A DNA stretch of 64,000 nucleotides, taken from contig OZ249441.1 of assembly GCA_965235115.1 (NCBI GenBank), positions 16,368,001 to 16,432,000 on the forward strand, written 5' to 3'. The position numbers and the translations under genes were made by a program. Below, piece after piece: positions 39,736 to 55,100 of this stretch (the first letter of the stretch is position 1; each line of letters opens with the position of its first letter). The DNA comes from Laetmonice hystrix. Lineage: Eukaryota. The notes beneath the pieces are model-generated. The model was not told the origin of the DNA. It saw nothing but the letters and a program-made list of their open reading frames with translations, and ran no database searches.

Positions 39736-40914
39736 GACAAAACGAAGATAAGACCTCCGGACTACAGAACCTAACGAGCCCCCGTACACCTGGGAACCTT
39801 CGTTTAGTTTTACCCACCACGGTTGGCTACCCGTAGCAGGAATTAAAATATGCTTACTTGATGTCAGGTTGAGCTGCGTGAGATCCCACTTTGCTGTTTA
39901 GAGCCGAGGAGATTATATCGCCGGTCTGCGATTTCGGAAAAACAGCCAAACATGCGGGCAACCAGCCCATGCACCCCAAACTTGCACAAGGAACGGCGAG
40001 ATTTAAGTAGGCCGGACGTGATGGTCGGTACCGACTACTCTTACGTAACGATTTGATCTCCTTTCAATGAGAGCTCATGAAAACTGGAAAGAGAACTGTC
40101 CAAAATGATTCATTGTTTATTTCGACTAAAATTTTGATCCTGCGACCATTTTGATATCAATGATGTTTCCGATGATATTCGCTGCTGATATAGCGAGATC
40201 TATATCTGGTTGTTATTGCAAACGGAGTTCTAGTTTGGAATCTTAATAAACAAACATCATTTATTGGTGTTGCCTATCCTCATATCGTTTCTGACTTTGA
40301 TCCGAGGCGTGACTAGAAACGGCAGGCAGGTTAAACCACCTGTTCCGACAGGAAACCAAAGCTAACCTTCAATTATCTGGTAAATTCTCTACAGAATAAG
40401 TCACAGTCTACATAGTATCAGCTGCGGGAGGGGGTGGGGTGTATCCTGGACAGAACGCTGCATAAACCCCCAAACTTACCAAATGTGGGACCTTTCAAAA
40501 CAACACAACAAAGTGTGCTCGTGGCAGGGATACGAGTGCACACTGATCTGATGGGGCGAGGTCAGATTCTGGGACTCTACAACCAGGCTGTGCCAAACTC
40601 CTGCACCCTGTCACCTTCACACATAACACATAAACACATGTGAGCTTCTTATTCGTAAATTTTATCTTCTGGCCCATTAACTAAAAAAAACTCATCATTT
40701 ATATATACAGAAACGTGAATACTCTAACCATTGATAAGTTTGCGTGTTTAAAACTCCTAACTTACACGTTTCTTTGCGTCAGCCATTAATCTAAGCGCAG
40801 GGTTAAGGAAAAGGGACACCCCGAGTTCTGAGAATCTGTTAATCGGTTTCCACATCTGTACCAACATGTCACAACTCGATCACGGGACTGTAGGGGCATG
40901 GGGCCAATACAATA

Positions 40915-41100
40915 CACAAAAGTTCAAACCAGGACTTCATGTGTCCAAACCTGGACACAATGAAGGAACAGATACGGCACAAAAGTTCAAACCAGGACTT
41001 CATGTGTCCAAACCTGGACACAATGAAGGAACAGTGACGGCACAAAAGTTCAAACCAGGACTTCATGTGTCCAAACCTGGACACAATGAAGGAACAGATA
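40915..41100. repeat. 63-bp tandem repeat x3 with an internal 8-bp hairpin
   Basis: agttcaaacc at 40921, 40984 and 41047; tgtgtcca-aacc-tggacaca in each unit. Confidence 0.95.
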
Positions 41101-41662
41101 GGCACTATAAGTGATAAATCCAAACTGTTCAATAACAGACCGATCCCTATTGCCAGGCAACAATTTTATGTGGGACTTCATCCAACTTTGATACACAACA
41201 TGTGAAAGACTAAAATATAGGATGATCAGTGTTTATTTAGGCAGTTCTATGGAAACAAGTAGAACAGTCACATTCGCGCAGAGTGAAATCGGAAACGTAT
41301 TAAGTCAAGCATGCTCGCGAACATGTTTTCAGTAAAACATGTTTCGTTATCATGGATACAGTCAGTTCTATGCTAAATTGGTTCAGGCACCAGGCCTGAA
41401 CCAGACTAGTTGACAAAGTACCTTGCAAAACGAGTGCTTCCTTTGCAGACCAGCATCCCCATCCGTCCAAAATGAAAAAAAAACACTTCTGGCTATCGGG
41501 ATGAATATTAAAGGCCGGTACTTTAATGACTATGAAATGTGAAGGGGGCGCTGTTTGCAAACTGCATCAGAGAGTCTGGGGTCTTATCCCCAGGAAAACT
41601 TGAATCTTAGCAAGCTACCTCGGAGAGAGGTCAAACCCCTAAAGCCACATGTGTCATTGAGA

Positions 41663-44600
41663 TTAGTCGTATTCTGGATCTTCTGCATGTCTCCCCTTTG
41701 GCCCCCATGATAAACTGGGGCCCTTCCACGCTTTGGCATGATCGTATCGATGTTTCCTTCCAGAACCTGCATGCCTCCCAACTGGCTCATCACCATCCAG
41801 ATCCTCGTCAGATACAGGGTCTGCACCCTCCTGGGTCCTGCATGTGTAAAAGATGGGTTCCGCATACAATTATAGTCATCTGGGACACCTACGTGTACAC
41901 ATTTTTATTATGGCACGTACGTTTACAGGACATTGATCTATAGAATCGCTAACCACAGAATCAATATTTTACAGACATAACTTCGAATGAAACACAAATG
42001 GCTGCCATGCGTAGTCTAGCTCTGCAGTGAAACGATGAAGACGAACTCCGCACTTCGCGTCATAATCATTCTACAATGGTTGAACAACTTACATTTTATC
42101 TGCACCGAGACAGCAGCGTTCAAAGACGGTAATACACGACTCTCTGGAACTGCCCATCATCAGTGAAAACGTGCGGGCGGCCCTGGAACACTCCACGCTC
42201 ATCGAGTCCTCCTGCGTCGACTTGGTAACAAATGTCTGTCCAGCCCGGCAGCACAAGTGGCGCGGGTTCCCTGTACATGATTAACAATATGTTATCAGTC
42301 TTTTCATTGGAAATGAAGAAAAAATGTATATGTCAACATTTTTAGTAAGAAATACTTATTAATGTGAATCTGGCTGCGGCTAAGTCAATAAGGTGTCAAT
42401 AAAGGTGACTGGGAATGACATAAATTTATAATAATTTTGTCTCGAAGAGAAACCTACATCTCTTCTTTTGGTCGACCGGTTTCCTCGGATGCTTCTCAAG
42501 GTTGTAGAGCGTATCGGCGTCATCAATATCAATGTCCTCTTCGTAGCCATCCGTCATCTCCTGATATGGAATTCGTACCTTGAATGTACTTGTATTTGTA
42601 TAGGTATAGGATTTCAGAGGGATATTTGATTCAGTCACTTTGTATGGAGTAGGAGTGGTTGAGTGTATCTTTGTGTCCGTGGTCCTCTATAGGGCCTATA
42701 AGTATGTGTGGGGTGGGAGTGTGTGTGTGTATCCCTGTATCCATGGTCCTTTATAGGGCCTAAGTATACATGACTTAGATAGTTGAAGTGCATTCGGGTT
42801 AGTTAGGTACAGAAGCGACTGCCAAAAAGCTAAGATAAATAAACACGGCATGGTCAGGGTGCCAGTTGATATTCTCATCTGTTGACTCTAATAAACACGG
42901 CATGGTCAGGGTGCCAGTTGACATTCTCATACTGTTGACTCTAATAAACACGGCATGGTCAGGGTGCCAGTTGACATTCTCATACTGTTGACTCTAATAA
43001 ACACGGCAAAGTCAGGGTGCCAGTTGACATTCTCATACTGTTGACTCTAATAAACACGGCAAAGTCAGGGTGCCAGTTGACATTCTCATACTGTTGACTC
43101 TAATAAACACGGCATGGTCAGGGTGCCATTTGACATTCTCATACTGTTGACTCTAATAAACACGGCATGGTCAGGGTGCCAGTTGACATTCTCATACTGT
43201 TGACTCTAATAAACACGGCATGGTCAGGGTGCCAGTTGACATTCTCATACTGTTGACTCTAATAAACACAGCATGGTCAGGGTGCCATTTGACATTCTCA
43301 TACTGTTGACTCTAATAAACACGGCATGGTCAGGGTGCCAGTTGACATTCTCATACTGTTGACTCTAATAAACACGGCATGGTCAGGGTGCCAGTTGACA
43401 TTCTCATACTGTTGACTCTAATAAACACGGCATGGTCAGGGTGCCAGTTGACATTCTCATACTGTTGACTCTAATAAACACGGCATGGTCAGGGTGCCAG
43501 TTGACATTCTCATACTGTTGACTCTAATAAACACGGCATGGTCAGGGTGCCAGTTGACATTCCCATACAGACTCTAATTTTTCTCATCTGATTAGAAATA
43601 GCTAAAAAAAACTGAATATAACTTGAAAGAGATTTTTACTATTATAGTTTATGAAACAAGGCATCCCGTAAGTTTATGAAAAAATGGCTATGGTAACCCT
43701 TAAATAACTTAAAATCAATTCACCACAGAATAAATATATATTTACCTCTTCGAAGCTCTCGATAGCGTCCTCCGATTCATTGCGCCTTGTTGTGCGGTCG
43801 AAACAGCTGTACCGTGCTGAGCCTGGTCAAGTGAAAAAATTCAAACTTTGAACAAACTAAACGCATTATACACCATCACTACTGTAACCTGAGACTTTGT
43901 TTTCCATTGTGCTCCATATACAGTCAATAGGCTGGGTCAAGGCATGTATAGGCAGGAATCACCAAAGATGAGGCGTACCATTCACCGAACAACATGTGTC
44001 CCTCAGTTTATACGCTTTCTTGTATATCCGTGGCTTTCCTCGGGCCCATGGTTTCAGCGGCATGTCGGCATCGCAGAACTTGTCTATACGCATGTGTTGC
44101 ATGTCCACAAAACACTCTACCCTGGTAATGTTCTGAAACCATCACAGTATATGGTCACCATTACATCCAGACCCATGTTAATACTTTATACTTTTTCACA
44201 AAGATTTTTCATTTCACATTCTCTAATGAAGCAATTACAGACGAAGCCTTTTTGTTACTTCATAGATAAATAGTGGCACTGATTAATGGGTTTAGGACAA
44301 AGCTGAAGGAAAACTCACATTTTTGCAGCACTGTTTCATCTTCTCCACAAACTCCAGGCGGTAGTGTTTACGGTCGACGTTCCCAACGCCGTGCTTGTAC
44401 TTTTTACGGACGATTTCCATGAATCGCCGATGGGGGCGCTTCTGTATCTTCCAGCAAACAATGGAAACACGTTTTTCCATGGGCATCTGTTGTATAAAGT
44501 TATGGGTTATAATTAACTACTGCATGTGGTAATTTAACCCCTCCCTTAATGAAATATTTTGCCAATTTGGAATTATTGCTTCCTCAAGCTGTCGTGAGCA

Positions 44601-47136
44601 ACACGTTCTTTTATTTTGTTATGTTATAATAATATTTTAATATTATAGACAATGCTTTGGGCAAAAATATATTACCAAACTCAGTATAGAACTGCGTATA
44701 TATGACAGCTACGTGTACCTGAATGAATTAACTCATTACATGAATGTATGAGTGAGTGAATGGTTGAACTATAAGTAACGAGTAGAGATATCAAACCTGA
44801 GACAGGATGCTATGACGCCTGCGGTGGCCGCCATGGTGACGGCCAGTATGGTGACCACGCCTGTGATGAGAACGATGTCTACCATGGGACCCATGCTTCC
44901 TTCCCTCTGCCGCCAACTGCTGCTTCCCCCGCCCCGGGATCCTGACAGGCTTCATGGACTTCTCAAACCACCAACCGTGCTTCCCGTTCAAGGGATACTT
45001 TTGATCCCCGTCGACTTCAGGTTTTATCTTACTAGGTCTTCTCCACTGAGGACGTATGTCGTATCCCTGGCCGCCATTCCTCGATACGCCAGCCGCCTCA
45101 TCTTCCTCACCGTGGTCCACAGTGTCATCATCTTCACTAAGGTCTGTAGTGTCATCCCAGTCCTTAGTGGCTGTGTCCAGTCCGACGCTGTCAAAGTCCT
45201 CATTACTTGCCACAACATCTTCTAATTCGGCTGAGATAATTTGAACAATAAGATATAGAAAGATTCGTAACATGGTAATCATGTGTATATCTCATAATGT
45301 CACATTGTGTATGTATGTATGTTATGTAGATCACATAAAGACATTCATACCAAGACATGGTTGTTTCAAAGTGAAAACATTCAATGTCACATCTATCATG
45401 TGTATATCTCATAATGTCACATTGTGTATGTATGTATGTATGTAGATCACATAAAGACATTCATACCAAGTCATGGATGTTTCAAAGTGAAAGCATTCAA
45501 TGTCACATCTATCATGTGTATATCTCATAATGTCACATTGTGTATGTTATGTAGATCACATAAAGACATTCATACCAAGACATGGTTGTTTCAAAGTTAA
45601 AACATTCAATGTCACATCTATCATGTGTATATCTCATAATGTCACATTGTGTATGTATGTAGATCACATAAAGACATTCATACCAAGACATGGATGTTTC
45701 AAAGTGAAAGCATTCAAAGTCACATCTATCATGTTTATATCTCATAATGTCACATCGTGTATGTATGTATGTTATGTAGATCCCATAAAGACATTCATAC
45801 CAAGACATGGTTGTTTTAAAGTGAAAGCATTCAATGTCACACCTACCATGTGTATATCTCATAATGTCACATTGTGTATGTATGTAGATGCCATAAAGAC
45901 ATTCATACCAAGACATGGTTGTTTTAAAGTGAAAGCATTCAATGTCACATCTATCATGTTTATATCCCATAATGTCACATTGTGTATGTATGTATGTTAT
46001 GTAGATCCCATAAAGACATTCATACCAAGACATGGTTGTTTTAAAGTGAAAGCATTCAATGTCACATCTACCATGTGCCTGTGGGTAACTCGAGACGAGC
46101 TCAAGTGGTTTTGAATGATAAAATGACGTTATCGATACATACCCATATTCTCGTCCACGACATCGAGAAGGTTAGTGTACATTACGTCAGCATCTTCACC
46201 ATTGCTGCCTGGAAAGAGAGTCAGCAGTATGGTCTGAGGAATTATACAGTAGTATACAGTAAAACAGACAATCACAAAAGGTTTGTAAGTTCCTTCTCCG
46301 TGTAATTATCTCTCTCACTTAGTGTTAACAAGTTTGGATGCCATAAATGTTGGGGACTTTACACATCGGCATATCTCGGCTGATTCTGAATTGGACTCGA
46401 GGAAATAATTCCTAGACTCGTGAATGGTACAATATATTTTTGATAAATAGTTGGTTAAATTAAAAAGTCTTCCTTGCGATCTCGACACGCAGTTTACAGT
46501 TTAACTGAATCCGCACAACAATAACACAAAAGGGTTCGAAGTCCAGTCTGAGTGTCGTTTTGAAAACTCGACGCAAACCCAAGACAAGCGTTCCCTAATA
46601 TTGATTGATTGCAGATCAAAAGTCCGAACACGCATGGCAGTAAGGGTGATCTCTTGTGAAGTTTGTCGAATACATACACGAATATATAAACCGATCTTTT
46701 CTTGTATCAAAGTTACATTTCTGTGGGATCATAGGCCATCTATAATCTTTCCAATGTGTATATTTTAATCTCCAATCTATACAATATATGTAACAGGATA
46801 AAGTTTTCTCCAATCAGCCTGAGAAAATAAGGCGAATGAACCAAGAAGTAGATACCGCGATGTTCTCTCAAAAAGTCTGTTTGGTCAGAAGACAAGAGTA
46901 GATTAGATACCAGTGGAATAACTTTTACTATACTATTACGATATCGTTTCCCAAACCATGGTTCTCTGATCTGGATTTGCCCATACCGGTTATACAAATG
47001 TAATTAGATGACCTTTGACATTCTTACAAAGTAAAAGAACCGATAGGGGACTCTTACCTTCTTCATACTGGGCCACTACGGTGGTCACAAGTACCACAGC
47101 CCAGAACAGAGAGTAGATTCTGCCCCGTCCAACCAT
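41663..47136 (-). CDS. Secreted acidic/His-rich protein with ECM1/albumin-type cysteine doublets and an anaphylatoxin-like domain, 9 exons, about 477 aa
   Basis: Phase-consistent GT-AG exons: 47136-47058 (signal peptide MVGRGRIYSLFWAVVLVTTVVA), 46208-46143, 45230-44797, 44486-44319, 44132-43979, 43822-43746, 42560-42458, 42270-42093, 41837-41663 (1434 nt). Motifs QCCKNNITRVECF, TCCSVNGSARYSCF and LCCRAG..C..C....RCC. Confidence 0.8.
42838..43572. repeat. 53-bp minisatellite, about 14 copies, in intron 6 of the secreted-protein gene
   Basis: Unit aataaacacggcatggtcagggtgccagttgacattctcatactgttgactct. Confidence 0.97.
45278..46076. repeat. 108-117-bp tandem repeat, about 7 copies, with a variable internal (tatg)n, filling intron 2 of the secreted-protein gene
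   Basis: Unit starts near 45278, 45395, 45511, 45620, 45728, 45845, 45953 and 46070. Confidence 0.95.
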
Positions 47137-48098
47137 GGTCCTAGCGTGAGCTCGTCCACGAGTCTGTTAATCTGACGACGGGTTCTCCCAGCGTTTATAG
47201 CTGGGACCAGCAGCCCCCTCCCCCTACCCTCCCCTAACACGTGACTATGATTCAGACAGGCTCTCGCGAACGCCACATTTAGACATCGAACCTTCTCGGA
47301 GGTGCCAAAGCAGTGTGATGTGACGACAGCTCTCACGCCATCGTATGGCTCTGCTTTCTCAACCCTCGTGTCATTCACTGAACTTTTACTGATGTAATCT
47401 TTCTCCGAATCCCAAATAAATAGACGCACAGGGATAACATTGTGAAAGTTTACATAAAAATTGTATCAGGCATAGATTATATGTAATAATACATTACGAG
47501 GGAAAGATTAGGGTAGAGTTGTGGCGGCTGATTCAATGAAACAATTAGATTGATTCCCGTAAAAACATTGCCTGTATGACATGTAGGACCAGACTGGCTC
47601 ACTGCCGACCTGAGTTCTGAGTCAATCAGGTGTCAAAGTGACAACCTTCATCTACACCAAACAGATTTTAAAAAGTGAAAGCAGTATTATGTATAGAGCT
47701 CCGTGGATGCCAGCTAAGTGAACGTTGCATAAAAAAATAACTTCATCATATTTCATATGTGATTAATGTACATATAAGGACATGTACATAATATAGACGC
47801 CGCTAACTTACATGTTTAACCGTTGATATTATCACTATAGACTCAGTCCCGTTGGAAACACGTATTGAACTCGTTCGCTGTACCCCGAGTAATTGCACTC
47901 TAAACTATACCGAAAAGAATCACAATAGTTATGATATAGAAAACATTTAAAGTTCATATTAAACACTCAGAAAAGGAGACGAAACTGATCATTTATCGTC
48001 CGACCCAGGTCATCACCTGTGCGTTCGTCATTCTTAGCGTCATGAGGTCAATCTGACACAACTATACTGACACAATCGTTATAGAACTGTGGACATCT

Positions 48099-50193
48099 TC
48101 ACAGTGTCGTTGCTGCTGTAGTTTCTCCATTGGTAAGAGCTACTGCTTGTTCGCAATCGTGCAGCATGACTCGTTTATCCTTTGCGTTGCGACTGCATGT
48201 GAATATAGCCTTCATGGAATGGCGAAAGTGAACATTAACTACGCAGTAGAGGACAAAATGAAAGGCGAAATTTGAAGCCTGTAAAAGATTCAGACATCCT
48301 ACGATGACGTTATACGCCGAGGTGAAATTCGGTGCCGACATGACAGAGAGGCGCAGGAATGTACTGACTTCTGCTGGAAGTACAAGCACCGTATACATGA
48401 GCACAATCATTGCAAGAGTTAGACTGATCCGGTGGGTGTCCGACTGACCCATGGCTGACAGTGACTGCCCGGGTTCGCGGAACCACAGTGATTTTCTCAG
48501 GGCTTTCACCAGCCGGATGTTGCAGAACATTAGCATCGTGAAGGGCAACACGGTGGCGAAAAAAAAATACGTACAAATGTAAGTCATATGCAAAGTCTGC
48601 CTTTGTTTAAAAATTCCTTGCGACCGGAAGTAGACACTCCAACCTCCTATACATTCCATGGTGTCCACGACCTCTTTCCAAAAGCGCGGTAAATTGCAGA
48701 CGACACAAAGTAGGAAGATGACAACAATAGAAATCCGTGCACGACAGCCACTGATCACACAACGGGCCTGTAGAGGACGACAGATGGCAACATACCTGGA
48801 AATGGACAAACAGTTCCATTCAATCAGTCATCTATTTTATGAACTATTTCCATGACCTCTCTGTCTCTCTCTGTCTCTGTCTCTGTCTCTGTCTCTCTTT
48901 GTCTCTACCCCTTTCATTCGTTAAATTCCCACTCAAGTATACATCGGACTTTTAACAAAGTTTAAAATATGGTTCATGAAAGTCATAAAACTAACCCCTG
49001 GAAACGAATCACAGCGGGAACTTAATCAAGACCGTGATAGATTGAGACCTTAATATTTCTGCGGAAACATAATATACTATGCCATAATATATTATAGGAC
49101 CTGGATTGTTACATAAACCCGCTGGGGTTTCTACAATCCCCCCATCAGCAGGCAATCCTGCTCAACATGAATTACTCTGCTCCATTCTTGTTTGGTAATT
49201 AAAAAAGAGAAGGAAATAGCTACCTGCTGATTGCCATAGCAACCGTTAACCACGTGCTACACATGACAAACACGTTGATGAGAGCGTCGCTGTAGAGGCT
49301 GTAGTAGAGGTTAAAACTTGGGTTCATGAAGTAAAACTGTCGAGGGACCCAGGCATGTGGCAGGACACATGCACAAAACATCATGTCTGAAAGGGCCAGC
49401 GCTGCCAATCCCATATAGACCGTTCGCTCCATTGTCGTCATGCCTACGGTAATAAATTGATACGAACTATTAATTACTAAGGAGAAACTTTCGAGAATTT
49501 TAACTACTAGTGTAAGAAAACTATAAATTTACATCATGTTGAATGGGGGGTTTTTAAACTCAGAAGCGATCTATCATTATATGAGGGCGATATTTGTGGG
49601 AACCGGAGTTAAACCTCAGACCAGTGGCAAGCAGCTGACAAACTGTTCACAATAGTCAAGATTGCTGAGATTAAAGAGTCGTTGAGATATGAAGCCCTGG
49701 ATAGGAGGTATTAAGCTGCAAAACACCTTTGTTCATAATGCTAATAATCAAGGTAGGTGGTTTATGATTACACATCCTTTGATGTGAAAATCATGAACTA
49801 TTATTCACGTAATACGCACGCGGTCTTTTGGAAATTGAAAAGTTCAGTCGAATTATGTGAATTGATTTTCAGTTTTATGTCCGGAAGGTCTACATATAGT
49901 CACTAACCTGCCTGCAATCTGCGTCGCGTTAGGACAGCCATGTTGAGGGCATTGCCCACAAGTCCAGCCACGCACACCAGAGTGACCACTTTGGAGTAGA
50001 GCAAATGTTCTGCCCTCACCAAAATGTCGTCTGCCCCGGTTCCATTGTGTCGGACCGCGCCCGAATACCGCCAATTTCCGTCCTGCGGGAAAAGTTCCGG
50101 CTCCTGCCGGTTGGTTTCCGACCAGTTCAGACTGGAGCCCGGAGTGGTGACGTTGGAAAATGCCACAAGCGCCAGTGGTATGCAATCGGCCAT
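48099..50193 (-). CDS. Rhodopsin-class peptide GPCR, FMRFamide-receptor-like orphan, 3 coding exons, about 400 aa
   Basis: Exons 50193-49908, 49443-49224 and 48795-48099, phase-consistent. Motifs GLVGNALN (TM1), LALSDMMFC (TM2), STWLTVAMAISRYVAICRPL (TM3), CNLPRFW (TM4), VLPF..L (TM5), VL.LP (TM6), SNFAFHFVLYC (TM7). An in-frame stop lies upstream of the ATG at 50193. Confidence 0.92.
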
Positions 50194-50907: not shown

Positions 50908-51586
50908 TCCGGGGCTAATTTATTGCATGCCGGGGCTAGGCTAGACTAGACTAAAGTAAAGGCAGCCGAGGCGGGTAGGCAAAATCAACGGGGGTCAGTC
51001 CCACAGTCACAGTCACAACTAAAACAGGTCTGTGCCGAACTGACCACAGGAGCCTGACACTGCCAGCACCCGCCCGCGGTCGGAGCCACGGTCAGGGCCC
51101 GGCCCAGTGGCCCTGCGGGCCCCGTCAACATCACCTCCGAGCGAGACGAATTGAATGCCGGCGGCCAAAACCCACGGCTGGAGCTTGCCCAGATCCCTGT
51201 CCACCCTGATATATCCCCTGACATCGGTAGGCTTAATTCCTAGCCATTCCTCATCACTATGATCGATGGTTTTCGTCTATGTTCTAACAAATTTTGCTTA
51301 TATAAATAAGCTGTCAACGTTCGCTCAACGCAACAGGTGCGTCAGTTTTTCGTTCCTCCCAAACCGGAGAGCAGTGGTTGGAGCATGCGCATTGTGAGAT
51401 TAGCCCAAGGAGCAGACAGCTATGGCCGCCATCACCAGCGGAGCAGGTTCTAAGCAGGCTCCGGCACTAAATGCTTATATCTTAACTATTTGAGCACCAA
51501 TTGTGTTCAAATCTTTTTTAAATTGCTTAGAATATCACGGCCTGTGTGCTTTGCCTGTACACACTGGCGGTGGACGTTTCTTTTAA

Positions 51587-52138
51587 GTAATACACAATCG
51601 ATCAGATCGGAACTATTAGGTAACACACAATCGATCAGATCGGAACTATTAGGTAATACACAATCGATGAGATCGGAACTATTAGGTAACACACAATCGA
51701 TGAGATCGGAACTATTAGGTAATACACAATCGATGAGATCGGAACTATTAGGTAATACACAATCGATGAGATCGGAACTATTAGGTAATACACAATCGAT
51801 GAGATCGGAACTATTAGGTAATACACAATCGATGAGATCGGAACTATTAGGTAATACACAATCGATGAGATCGGAACTATTAGGTAATACACAATCGATC
51901 AGATCGGAACTATTAGGTAATACACAATCGATGAGATCGGAACTATTAGGTAACACACAATCGATGAGATCGGAACTATTAGGTAATACACAATCGATGA
52001 GATCGGAACTATTAGGTAACACACAATCGATCAGATCGGAACTATTAGGTAACACACAATCGATGAGATCGGAACTATTAGGTAATACACAATCGATGAG
52101 ATCGGAACTATTAGGTAATACACAATCGATGAGATCGG
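51587..52138. repeat. 33-bp minisatellite (gtaatacacaatcgatgagatcggaactattag), about 17 copies
   Basis: Direct tandem periodicity; this array explains the ORFs at 51490-52190. Confidence 0.97.
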
Positions 52139-55100
52139 AATGAAGTACCCTCTCTCCTGTTACTGCCCAGTGCATGCGAACATGTTGCAATACTTTTGGT
52201 CAGTTAGTGTAGGTTTGGCGCAGCGACTTTAATTATACTGCTTGATTGGCCGGAACATTCAATAAACTCTCAAATCATTTACACTAGAAGACTAGTTCCA
52301 ACAGTTACAGCTCTATTTGTAACTTTAATGATAAGCTGATAGTCCACACTGACCCGAGCCTATCCTATCTTGGCTCGGATCCTTGTCCTTGGCTCTGCCA
52401 CAGAAGTGACGAATCTTGTTAATGAGGTTCATCCATCCTGTTCAGTGTCAGGAACATTAATGCTGAATCATATTTCCCGCCTTACACGTCTCTGCACTCT
52501 ACTGAGATTGCACACACTTCACATGTAATGTCTGTTACTAGTGTGGTAATAAAACTCTCATCTGTTGTACGCACGATTGATTAAAGAATTAAGTTCAACG
52601 TTTCCTCTATCAGACCAAATCTGCTGCATGCAAGTGAACGAGTGGGCTGAAGCTGTAGAATGCGTGTTGCTTGTCATTTACGCATAGAATGACAACCTAT
52701 TTTTTTTGTACTGCAAAAACGCCATGTCAGGGTTTTTCAACGTTGACGTCGGCTACTCTATAATGATACGTGAATCAGCTAAGGTAATGTGCGTACAGCA
52801 TCCCGTGGATGCAGGCATAACAATTTATAACGTCTCGGCCCAGGACATTTCATGATACCACCTGTATGTATACACGGCTGCATTATTCACCGGTACCTGT
52901 CTCATGTACGTGTTAACAAGATTCCGTTAGACATCCTGTGAGATCTAATGAGATGAGAGAGTGAGCCTGGTAGCCTCAGGTGGTCTCACATGGGTGTCAT
53001 AAGGAATATGCCATCACTGCGGGCGGGCACCGCCACATCTTCCCGCCTTAATGACAGTCGGCCCAGAGTCGACCCCTGAATATATTTTATTTCACTCCCA
53101 GATTATGGTTCTTGTGGGGTTACGAGCGCCCAGAGGTTGTGCTTTACATCCCCTGGACCCCGACAAATAACCGAAATCAAAGGAATGTGGTGCTGTTCTA
53201 CTGAGACATATGGCGAGGTCCACTAAAGCTAATTCCAGGATGGCTACAGTCTTTGGGATCAGGTTTTCGTTTGATGCTCGGCGCATTTTTTAGCCCATTC
53301 TTTGGTTGTTATACATCCACACTGAAACCAGGCTGACTAACCAGAATACAAGTGGCGTTTGTGTCTCTACTAAAACCAATGATAAGCGATGAGGAGAAAT
53401 AAAAATGCACAAAAACGTAAATTCAGACGATCAAAAGGCCTCTTAGCTTCTGGGCATGTGTAGGAAAGGAGCGATAAACGAAACACGTTACGTCCCTACA
53501 GCTGTGCTATGGATGGAACTGGCATGTTAACTCTGCAGTCGTATTAAAAGCACTGTCGAATACGTCGCCTTGAGTGCCAGAAAACCCTGCCTTAGGCCGC
53601 CAATGGATCACTGTGACAGTTTTAACGTGGGGAAGAAATTTACTTCCGCCTACTGCGCACTACCAATGGTGCAAGAAGGTGTAAAGGAAGGCTCTACGCT
53701 AGTTTTATGACCCGATTGGTATCAAGAGGAAAGGCTGTTTCTATAGTGCAATACAATTATTGCAGCATAGCTTGGACGATTTCAAGTCATATACTGATAT
53801 TTTATATGTTAGACTGTGATTAGCCCACATCTCTGGATCCTTGAGACATGGGTAGATCAGGGATGTTTTATTGGAAGATTATGGGTTTGGTTTAAATAAA
53901 TAAATACGTCTTAATTAAACGCCTCTTTTCTCTGAAACTTGCCTCATCTTACTGAAAACATGTCAGGTCAATAACTTTTAAACTTTTGAAAACTGTAAAT
54001 TTTAGACATCAAGTTCCTATAGCTTTTGTTCACAAACGCAAAAAAACTGATAGTGTTCTATATTACTTTTGCATACAAGAGGCAGAATTTATCTGCTAAC
54101 TTAAAACTTAAACCCTTTACAAGCAACATTGTCATTACAATACATATCAGGGTGCCTCACCACCAACCACAGTCTGTATGATTCCACGCATGATGAAGCC
54201 CGTGTGATGTAGTGCCTAATCTCAGAAACAGATCGATCATTATATAGCAACCCCCTCGGCCAATTCGTGCAGCCATTGGAGAACTGCAACCAATCACAGG
54301 TGGGGAGTTTAATTCACCATCAGTTGTCAGCACTAGATGGTGTGACAGAAAAGTGATGGCGATCCAAATGGATATAGTATATGTCGACCAGAAACACTGT
54401 CAAAGTCCGTCTACTGAAAGTGATGCCAGAACCCAATGCCCATGGGCAGTACCGCTCGCAGAACAGTTTAATGCTGTATGATATCCCAGAAACCAGAAAG
54501 TTATTCACTAAAGTACTCTATTGATTTGCGATATCAACTTTCATTATATTCGAACAAAGAAGTAAATTACCTAATATCTCTGGAATAAAAGAAAGGGGAA
54601 TTACAAATGATTATTTACAAAGAGATGACTTGCTCAGGGCTATAATGCGGCATCCCTATAGATATGATGGCAGCAAAATCATTCATGTGAAATACATGTA
54701 TATAATGGAAGGCGCTTGTGTTAGATCTTCCCTATCCCTCACCAAGACAGACTAGTTCCGTATTCATGTAGGATGGGGAAACCCAGGACAGTAACACTAC
54801 ATGGGGCTAATTCTGTATGCGCTCATTTACCACAGAGAGCCTCGCATTAATCAATGTTCTTTCCTGATTGATGGCCATTTAGGCAAATTAACATGATCCA
54901 TACATGGCACGGGCATAAACTAAGTCGACCGAAATTATGAATCACCCATCGGAACATTAATTAGGGCTTCCATGATAATGGCAGCTTTTGAAGGACGCGA
55001 AACCCTTTTAGATATAAGTGGGGTAACTCGGTGAGAGAATTAAATAACGCCCCATTATGTGTCAAATGCTGTCACCCATTACATGGTAACTTTGTGGTCT

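Follow-up and report, generated by a model that had tools for sequence, protein, structure and literature searches.

A probable single-copy, lineage-restricted gene of Laetmonice hystrix predicted to encode a secreted charge-block protein with two cysteine modules

The window analysed here, a stretch of 64,000 nucleotides (nt) from Laetmonice hystrix (contig OZ249441.1, positions 16,368,001 to 16,432,000 of the forward strand), contains on its minus strand, from window position 47136 down to 41663, what is very probably a real, single-copy protein-coding gene. The gene appears to be lineage-restricted and its product, of about 52 kDa, is predicted to be secreted. It is best described as two familiar cysteine spacings, one ECM1/albumin-like (module A) and one anaphylatoxin-like (module B), reused in a new arrangement with polyelectrolyte linkers. 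The explanation that accounts best for the observations as a whole, and which we favour with slightly less than even confidence, is a real single-copy lineage-restricted gene whose secreted charge-block product carries two disulfide-locked helical modules and serves as a multivalent scaffold or binder.

Gene structure and evidence for coding function

The gene model was built from splice signals, with both strands read and the minus strand translated in three frames. The resulting coding sequence (47136..41663, minus strand) consists of nine exons and 1434 nt, corresponding to 477 codons followed by TAA. The introns are GT..AG in eight of eight cases, their phases agree throughout one reading frame, and the open, phase-matched model spans about 5.5 kb. 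The nine phase-consistent exons of the original prediction, which was made from the DNA letters alone, are therefore borne out. The features of the gene, in window coordinates and in the direction of transcription, are as follows.

47194..47199, minus strand: TATAAA box, 63 nt 5' of the ATG
47058..47136, minus strand: exon 1, with the ATG at 47136, the predicted signal peptide (residues 1-22, 47136-47071) and the start of the acidic block; GT donor
46143..46208, minus strand: exon 2, 66 nt, acidic block
44797..45230, minus strand: exon 3, 434 nt, with the remainder of the acidic block, a basic Gly/Trp/Lys region (residues 99-160) and the His/Arg block
44812..44895, minus strand: His/Arg block, residues 161-188, 11 His and 9 Arg per 28
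44319..44486, minus strand: exon 4, first part of module A (C204, CC246/247), predicted helical with low confidence
43979..44132, minus strand: exon 5, middle of module A (C256, C269, CC296/297)
43746..43822, minus strand: exon 6, end of module A (C307, 'RYSCF') and start of the second acidic linker; Thr-codon deletion allele at 43787
42458..42560, minus strand: exon 7, second acidic linker (residues 319-359, net charge -10), with KKR at its end
42093..42270, minus strand: exon 8, module B (CC367/368, C388, C406, CC413/414; cysteines 42110-42253), a predicted ANATO-like three-helix module
41663..41837, minus strand: exon 9, tail that is acidic then basic; TAA stop 41665-41663
41522..41527, minus strand: ATTAAA polyadenylation-type signal, 136 nt 3' of the stop

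Base composition separates the exons, with a guanine-plus-cytosine (GC) content of 0.47-0.56, from the introns, with 0.30-0.41, and GC peaks at codon positions 1 and 3 of the coding sequence. Variants were taken from three public runs, which are DNA contigs from one sample and contain the introns as well; these contigs confirm the assembly over every exon and also hold allelic differences. Among the variants listed there are 12 exonic single-nucleotide polymorphisms (SNPs), seven synonymous and five non-synonymous (298 synonymous and 1133 non-synonymous sites), giving, for these 12 SNPs from one sample, a ratio of non-synonymous to synonymous polymorphism per site (pN/pS) of 0.19 (binomial p = 0.005). 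None of the five replacement SNPs hits a cysteine. The sole exonic indel, in exon 6, deletes exactly one Thr codon, while deletions of 1 and 4 nt are among the intronic indels listed. Searches of the 627-Mb genome with exons 3, 4, 5, 8 and 9 recovered no copies other than the exons themselves, and the gene is thus present in a single copy.

Repeats lie within and around the gene. Intron 6 contains a 53-bp tandem array (window 42838-43568; 13.8 copies, 98% identity), of which the DNA contigs skip 43096-43469, such that the copy number is that of the assembly only. The same intron has, at 42659-42721 and within a 64-bp repeat present in 1.9 copies, a 61-bp deletion allele with 8 replacement letters in two of the three DNA runs. 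Intron 2 contains a 117/225-bp tandem array (45278-46077; about 7 copies, 90% identity), and a 57-bp unit repeated three times and open on both strands lies beyond the 3' end of the gene (40866-41132). On the gene's strand, about 15 nt 5' of the TATAAA box, there is a G-rich tract (GGGGAGGGTAGGGGGAGGGGG, window 47214-47234), possibly a promoter element or a G-quadruplex-type motif.

Charge blocks and cysteine modules

The predicted N-terminus (residues 1-22) consists of a basic n-region, a 16-residue hydrophobic core (mean Kyte-Doolittle value 2.19) and V-x-A before Gln23, and so has the form of the signal peptide that had been proposed. It is followed by an acidic block (residues 23-98) with 28 Asp/Glu per 76 residues and a net charge of -27, and a basic region (99-160) separates this from the His/Arg block (161-188). 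The net charges are +9 and +8 plus His for the basic blocks and +18 for module A. The Asp/Glu-rich region, the second acidic linker and the acidic-then-basic tail described previously were all located in the translation. So was the His-rich block (HGSHG..RRRH), whose 11 His in 28 residues exceed anything seen in shuffles of the mature protein (n = 5000), which peak at 8. With a fraction of charged residues of 0.35 and a net charge near zero, the protein is a strongly charge-segregated polyampholyte, and the segregation is far beyond chance: compared with shuffles the sequence charge decoration (SCD) has a z-score of -6.6, or -10.6 with His counted as charged.

By contrast, the 'many dibasic sites' of the original prediction do not stand out from the composition of the protein, which suffices to explain them; there are 17, against 13.2 +/- 3.0 expected in shuffles (p = 0.135). 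The enrichment of flanking dibasic sites typical of granins and prohormones is thus not seen. Eight of the sites are inside module A, and furin-type RX[KR]R sites are absent from the protein. Basic pairs do occur beside the modules, with EKR before and RR after module A, and KKR immediately before module B. The number of cysteines is even in each module, with 8 in A and 6 in B.

Module A (residues 194-318) has the spacing C204-x41-CC246/247-x8-C256-x12-C269-x26-CC296/297-x9-C307. The order C..CC..C..C..CC..C is that of the albumin-type double loop, and the CC-(X7-10)-C arrangement published for ECM1 (PMC3896652) occurs twice, as CC-x8-C and CC-x9-C. Paired as in an albumin-type double loop, the disulfides would be 204-246, 247-256, 269-296 and 297-307. 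In the albumin family the cysteines are practically the sole conserved residues (PMC5480655). Single-exon translations were used as the inputs for Pfam, HMMER, AlphaFold and Foldseek. The ECM1 profile PF05782 gave no match at E <= 10 to exons 4, 5 and 6, over which the module is split, and no match in a six-frame profile search of the whole genome, run without a positive control. The albumin profile PF00273 was likewise unmatched in the Pfam search of the single-exon pieces, as was a PROSITE-type albumin pattern. The piece encoded by exon 4 is predicted to be all-helical with low confidence (mean predicted local distance difference test, pLDDT, 64).

The ECM1 likeness that had been claimed therefore holds for the spacing but extends neither to the profile nor to the number of repeats. 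ECM1 has two tandem repeats and a C-terminal cysteine domain, whereas this protein has one double-loop unit followed by a differently spaced 6-Cys module; unlike ECM1, it also has polyacidic and His/Arg blocks and an ANATO-like module. What the two share is secretion, which for the present protein is predicted, a Cys-free N-terminal part, CC-(X7-10)-C found twice and, in the exon 4 piece, predicted helical structure. The likeness is one of cysteine spacing alone. The x12 spacing between the two single cysteines and the 'F/Y-C-D/E' and 'R-F/Y-S-C-F' contexts also seem to resemble the human ECM1 repeats, which we take as a lead only. In the literature consulted, ECM1 is treated as a vertebrate family.

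Module B (residues 360-420) has six cysteines with the spacing CC367/368-x19-C388-x17-C406-x6-CC413/414. The Pfam ANATO profile (PF01821) aligns over its full length (positions 1-36 of 36, on exon 8 residues 6-53) with E = 0.0052 and 18.1 bits, below the gathering cut-off of 21.4. Searching the whole genome with PF01821 was, as with PF05782, uninformative. A PROSITE-type ANATO pattern was unmatched, and the inter-Cys loops of 19 and 17 residues are longer than those of the canonical domain. The ANATO fold is a helical bundle with C1-C4, C2-C5 and C3-C6 disulfides, which in module B would be 367-406, 368-413 and 388-414. The best single-sequence AlphaFold (AF2) model of exon 8 is a three-helix bundle with a pLDDT of 77.7. 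Like the ANATO modules of C3/C4/C5 and of fibulin-1/-2, module B has the CC..C..C..CC pattern with a 'CC-x2-G' start and a 'C-x6-CC' end; its best model is a compact helical bundle. The host proteins differ, the present one being without C3- or fibulin-type domains.

When the exon 8 model was compared with the PDB using Foldseek nothing significant was found (human C3a at rank 18, E = 9.7), and VIA-align gave generic helical matches (Z <= 6.1). Fold matches in the Swiss-Prot part of the AlphaFold database (AFDB) and in the ESM Atlas were also generic helical bundles and were set aside as non-specific. The top matches in the AlphaFold cluster library are segments within secreted proteins of metazoans (template-modelling score 0.79-0.84, root-mean-square deviation 1.3-1.9 Å), with anaphylatoxin-like and complement C3 entries at ranks 5 and 10 (E = 2.9-5.3). 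A segment of about 55 residues superposes on the model with 20-26% identity in the uncharacterised A0A6F9DFU0 (537 amino acids), the 'Reelin domain-containing' A0A8B6D8A9, V4CG75 and A0A2C9LII2; these matches, compared by fold only, are not significant (E 0.05-0.6, except for A0A2C9LII2 with 7.6). In A0A6F9DFU0 the matched segment is near the C-terminus, a relative position similar to that of module B. The AFDB matches include a reeler domain, which is absent from this protein, and the matched segments were not recovered by an exhaustive sequence search with exon 8. The anaphylatoxin-like module that had been predicted is thus supported in its cysteine pattern and full-length profile alignment, while the score is sub-threshold and ANATO names appear only among weak fold matches. 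We call module B ANATO-like only, as its membership of the family is not demonstrated.

Search for relatives and genomic neighbourhood

The exhaustive HMMER search with exon 8 (58 residues) against 1.84 billion representative proteins revealed no true homologue, and complement, fibulin and ECM1 proteins were not among its results. Two bacterial surface-repeat proteins (DUF7617/DUF11, and a perfect 99-residue repeat) were matched and were rejected as relatives because their scores pile up over five or six Thr/Ser/Cys-rich stretches. The window's own protein was not returned either and is therefore unannotated in that collection, as had been supposed. Searches of a word-indexed library with exon 3 (144 residues) and exon 5 (51 residues) gave no match, under a length filter that excludes full-length relatives. 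PDB sequence searches with exons 4, 5 and 8 yielded nothing meaningful, and neither exon 8 nor exon 5 gave a usable match when the features of the ESM Atlas were searched. Nothing relevant was found in the literature on the combination of modules or on the AFDB accessions matched by exon 8. The earlier statement that no described protein has this combination agrees with these exon-level and literature searches, in which no characterised orthologue of the same architecture was found.

The neighbouring gene, upstream of the one described here, encodes a rhodopsin-type, Srw-like G-protein-coupled receptor (GPCR) with at least two exons (window 48099-50193, minus strand), and one of its exons served as a control. 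The best match of this exon in the library reaches only 64% identity, which shows that the collection is without a close relative of the species and that a fast-evolving secreted protein could escape a 58-residue query. This counterpart comes from a relative, where it lies on a contig of 455 kb. Over some 35 kb walked downstream of that exon, neither the spliced model (tblastn) nor the rest of the window (tblastx) found a match. The GPCR is the only gene shared between the window and the interval walked in the relative, and the blank there is accordingly not evidence of absence; synteny is not established, as it is supported by the GPCR alone and the GPCR family is expanded. A 13-residue 'DIDID..LYN' match in the relative was rejected as a short frame between stops with no splice context.

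The relative carries further GPCR paralogues beside a Ras-like open reading frame (ORF). Downstream of its GPCR there are a reverse-transcriptase (RVT_1) ORF (L013 14812-15843, contig ctg37710) and many short repeat ORFs. The GPCR intron of the relative is about nine times longer than that in the window, from which the relative's genome appears to be much more repeat-laden. TGTA-type simple repeats of the intron 2 array cross-match microsatellites on the relative's contig. Elsewhere in the window, a tandem array with a 33-bp period (51490-52190) is open on both strands, where repeated units of 11 residues make up ORFs of 217 and 227 codons; this array is probably non-coding satellite DNA.

Proposed function and alternative explanations

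Based on this architecture, the protein may be arranged as beads on a string, in which long and probably disordered stretches connect two small helical modules locked by disulfides. The two cysteine modules would act as protein-binding knobs, and the acidic blocks as binding sites for cations or for the basic blocks of the protein itself. Sequences with dense runs of His and basic residues next to acidic stretches are known ligands of Zn/Cu/Ni or polyanions, and their charge changes at around pH 6. The His/Arg run could be a pH- and metal-sensitive switch whose His residues carry charge while in an acidic secretory compartment and, once outside, are neutral or ligate metal (Zn/Cu/Ni). Such a switch would alter the pairing with the acidic blocks, within and between molecules, and could govern whether the protein self-associates or condenses in secreted material, for example in mucus or in the matrix of a tube or cuticle. 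The metal-binding or coacervation idea put forward in the original prediction appears compatible with the measured charge segregation. Taken by itself, this mechanism, an extracellular multivalent scaffold or binder with a pH/metal-switchable His/Arg run, is a possibility that we hold with less confidence than the overall explanation given above.

Histidine-rich glycoprotein, kininogen domain 5 and the invertebrate His-rich jaw, beak and byssus proteins likewise have a secreted run of His and basic residues near acidic stretches, although the comparison is one of analogy only. The known His-rich secreted proteins lack the two cysteine modules, and the run in the present protein is, in contrast to theirs, only 28 residues long and Arg-rich rather than Gly-rich. 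Similarity to known His-rich proteins was not detected in Pfam (exon translations) or in the word-indexed library.

Several points weigh against the scaffold or binder explanation. The mechanism is inferred from the sequence, and the His block is short compared with those of known His-rich structural proteins. The four other models of exon 8 are poor (pLDDT 43-62), and the fold searches of the PDB with the best one are non-specific. As no orthologue was recovered, there is no conservation between species to draw on. Only 12 exonic SNPs of a single sample underlie the variant test, and the listing omits 15 more variants. No RNA run was found for this organism, and the gene model itself is derived from genomic DNA.

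This last point also favours the view that the locus is non-functional, either a chance or decaying open frame pieced together by eye out of splice-like sites, or a gene so young that its function is not settled. No homologue was found in any database searched, the relative's assembly is blank over the 35 kb downstream of its best-matching GPCR exon, and the exon translations scored low in language-model recognition. Nine exons that stay open across 5.5 kb, bounded by canonical splice sites and agreeing in phase, would be hard to reconcile with such a view, however, as would the sharp GC contrast between exons and introns, the promoter and polyadenylation signals, the excess of synonymous variants, the in-frame exonic indel, and an even number of cysteines in recognisable spacings in each module. 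We regard it as the least probable of the explanations considered. A proprotein is unlikely, though less so. Here the anionic N-terminal block would mask a cationic His/Arg peptide, and cleavage at basic sites would free bioactive pieces, namely a His/Arg peptide resembling histatin and one or two helical peptides that are cationic and rich in disulfides, with antimicrobial or signalling roles comparable to the release of C3a/C5a. Anaphylatoxins are cationic helical peptides freed by proteolysis, and the ANATO-like form of module B, the basic pairs flanking the modules (EKR, RR, KKR) and the position of the net -27 block directly before the basic blocks (+9, +8 plus His, and +18 in module A) all suit this explanation. 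It is weakened because the dibasic sites are not enriched and eight of them are within module A, where cleavage would destroy the module. A furin-type site and a repeated peptide unit are also absent, and neither Pfam nor the exhaustive exon 8 search revealed homology to a known antimicrobial or neuropeptide precursor.

The protein could instead be a very divergent true relative of the vertebrate ECM1/albumin superfamily with a genuine ANATO domain, an ancient matrix adaptor that binds matrix proteins through its double loop as ECM1 does. The twofold CC-(X7-10)-C arrangement, the complete double-loop order and the end-to-end alignment of the ANATO profile (E = 0.0052) are consistent with such an origin, as is the near-restriction of conservation in the albumin family to its cysteines (PMC5480655). 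On the other hand, PF05782 is unmatched both in exons 4-6 and in the genome, there is one repeat unit in place of ECM1's two and C-terminal domain, and the PROSITE-type albumin and ANATO patterns both fail. The ANATO score is below the cut-off with loops longer than the canonical ones, and ECM1, albumin, fibulin and C3 are absent from the exhaustive exon 8 search results. We consider this explanation quite improbable. That module A could be a real albumin/ECM1-type double-loop domain, highly diverged, in a protostome protein that also carries a true ANATO module seems to us very improbable. If it were true, an albumin/ECM1 building block treated so far as a vertebrate invention would predate the split between protostomes and deuterostomes, and the double-loop domain would survive in a worm lineage, set among switchable polyelectrolyte linkers as part of a new architecture. 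Homology of the ECM1-like spacing would bear on the origin of the double-loop domain.

Orphan secreted genes are common in such genomes, and the gene described here is one of many in a lophotrochozoan genome; it is of value chiefly as a candidate in proteomic studies of matrix or secretome. If expressed, the secreted charge-block protein that we favour would be a well-defined lineage-restricted product that pairs folded cysteine knobs with charge-segregated, His-switchable linkers, a design that underlies pH- and metal-triggered condensation in several invertebrate biomaterials.

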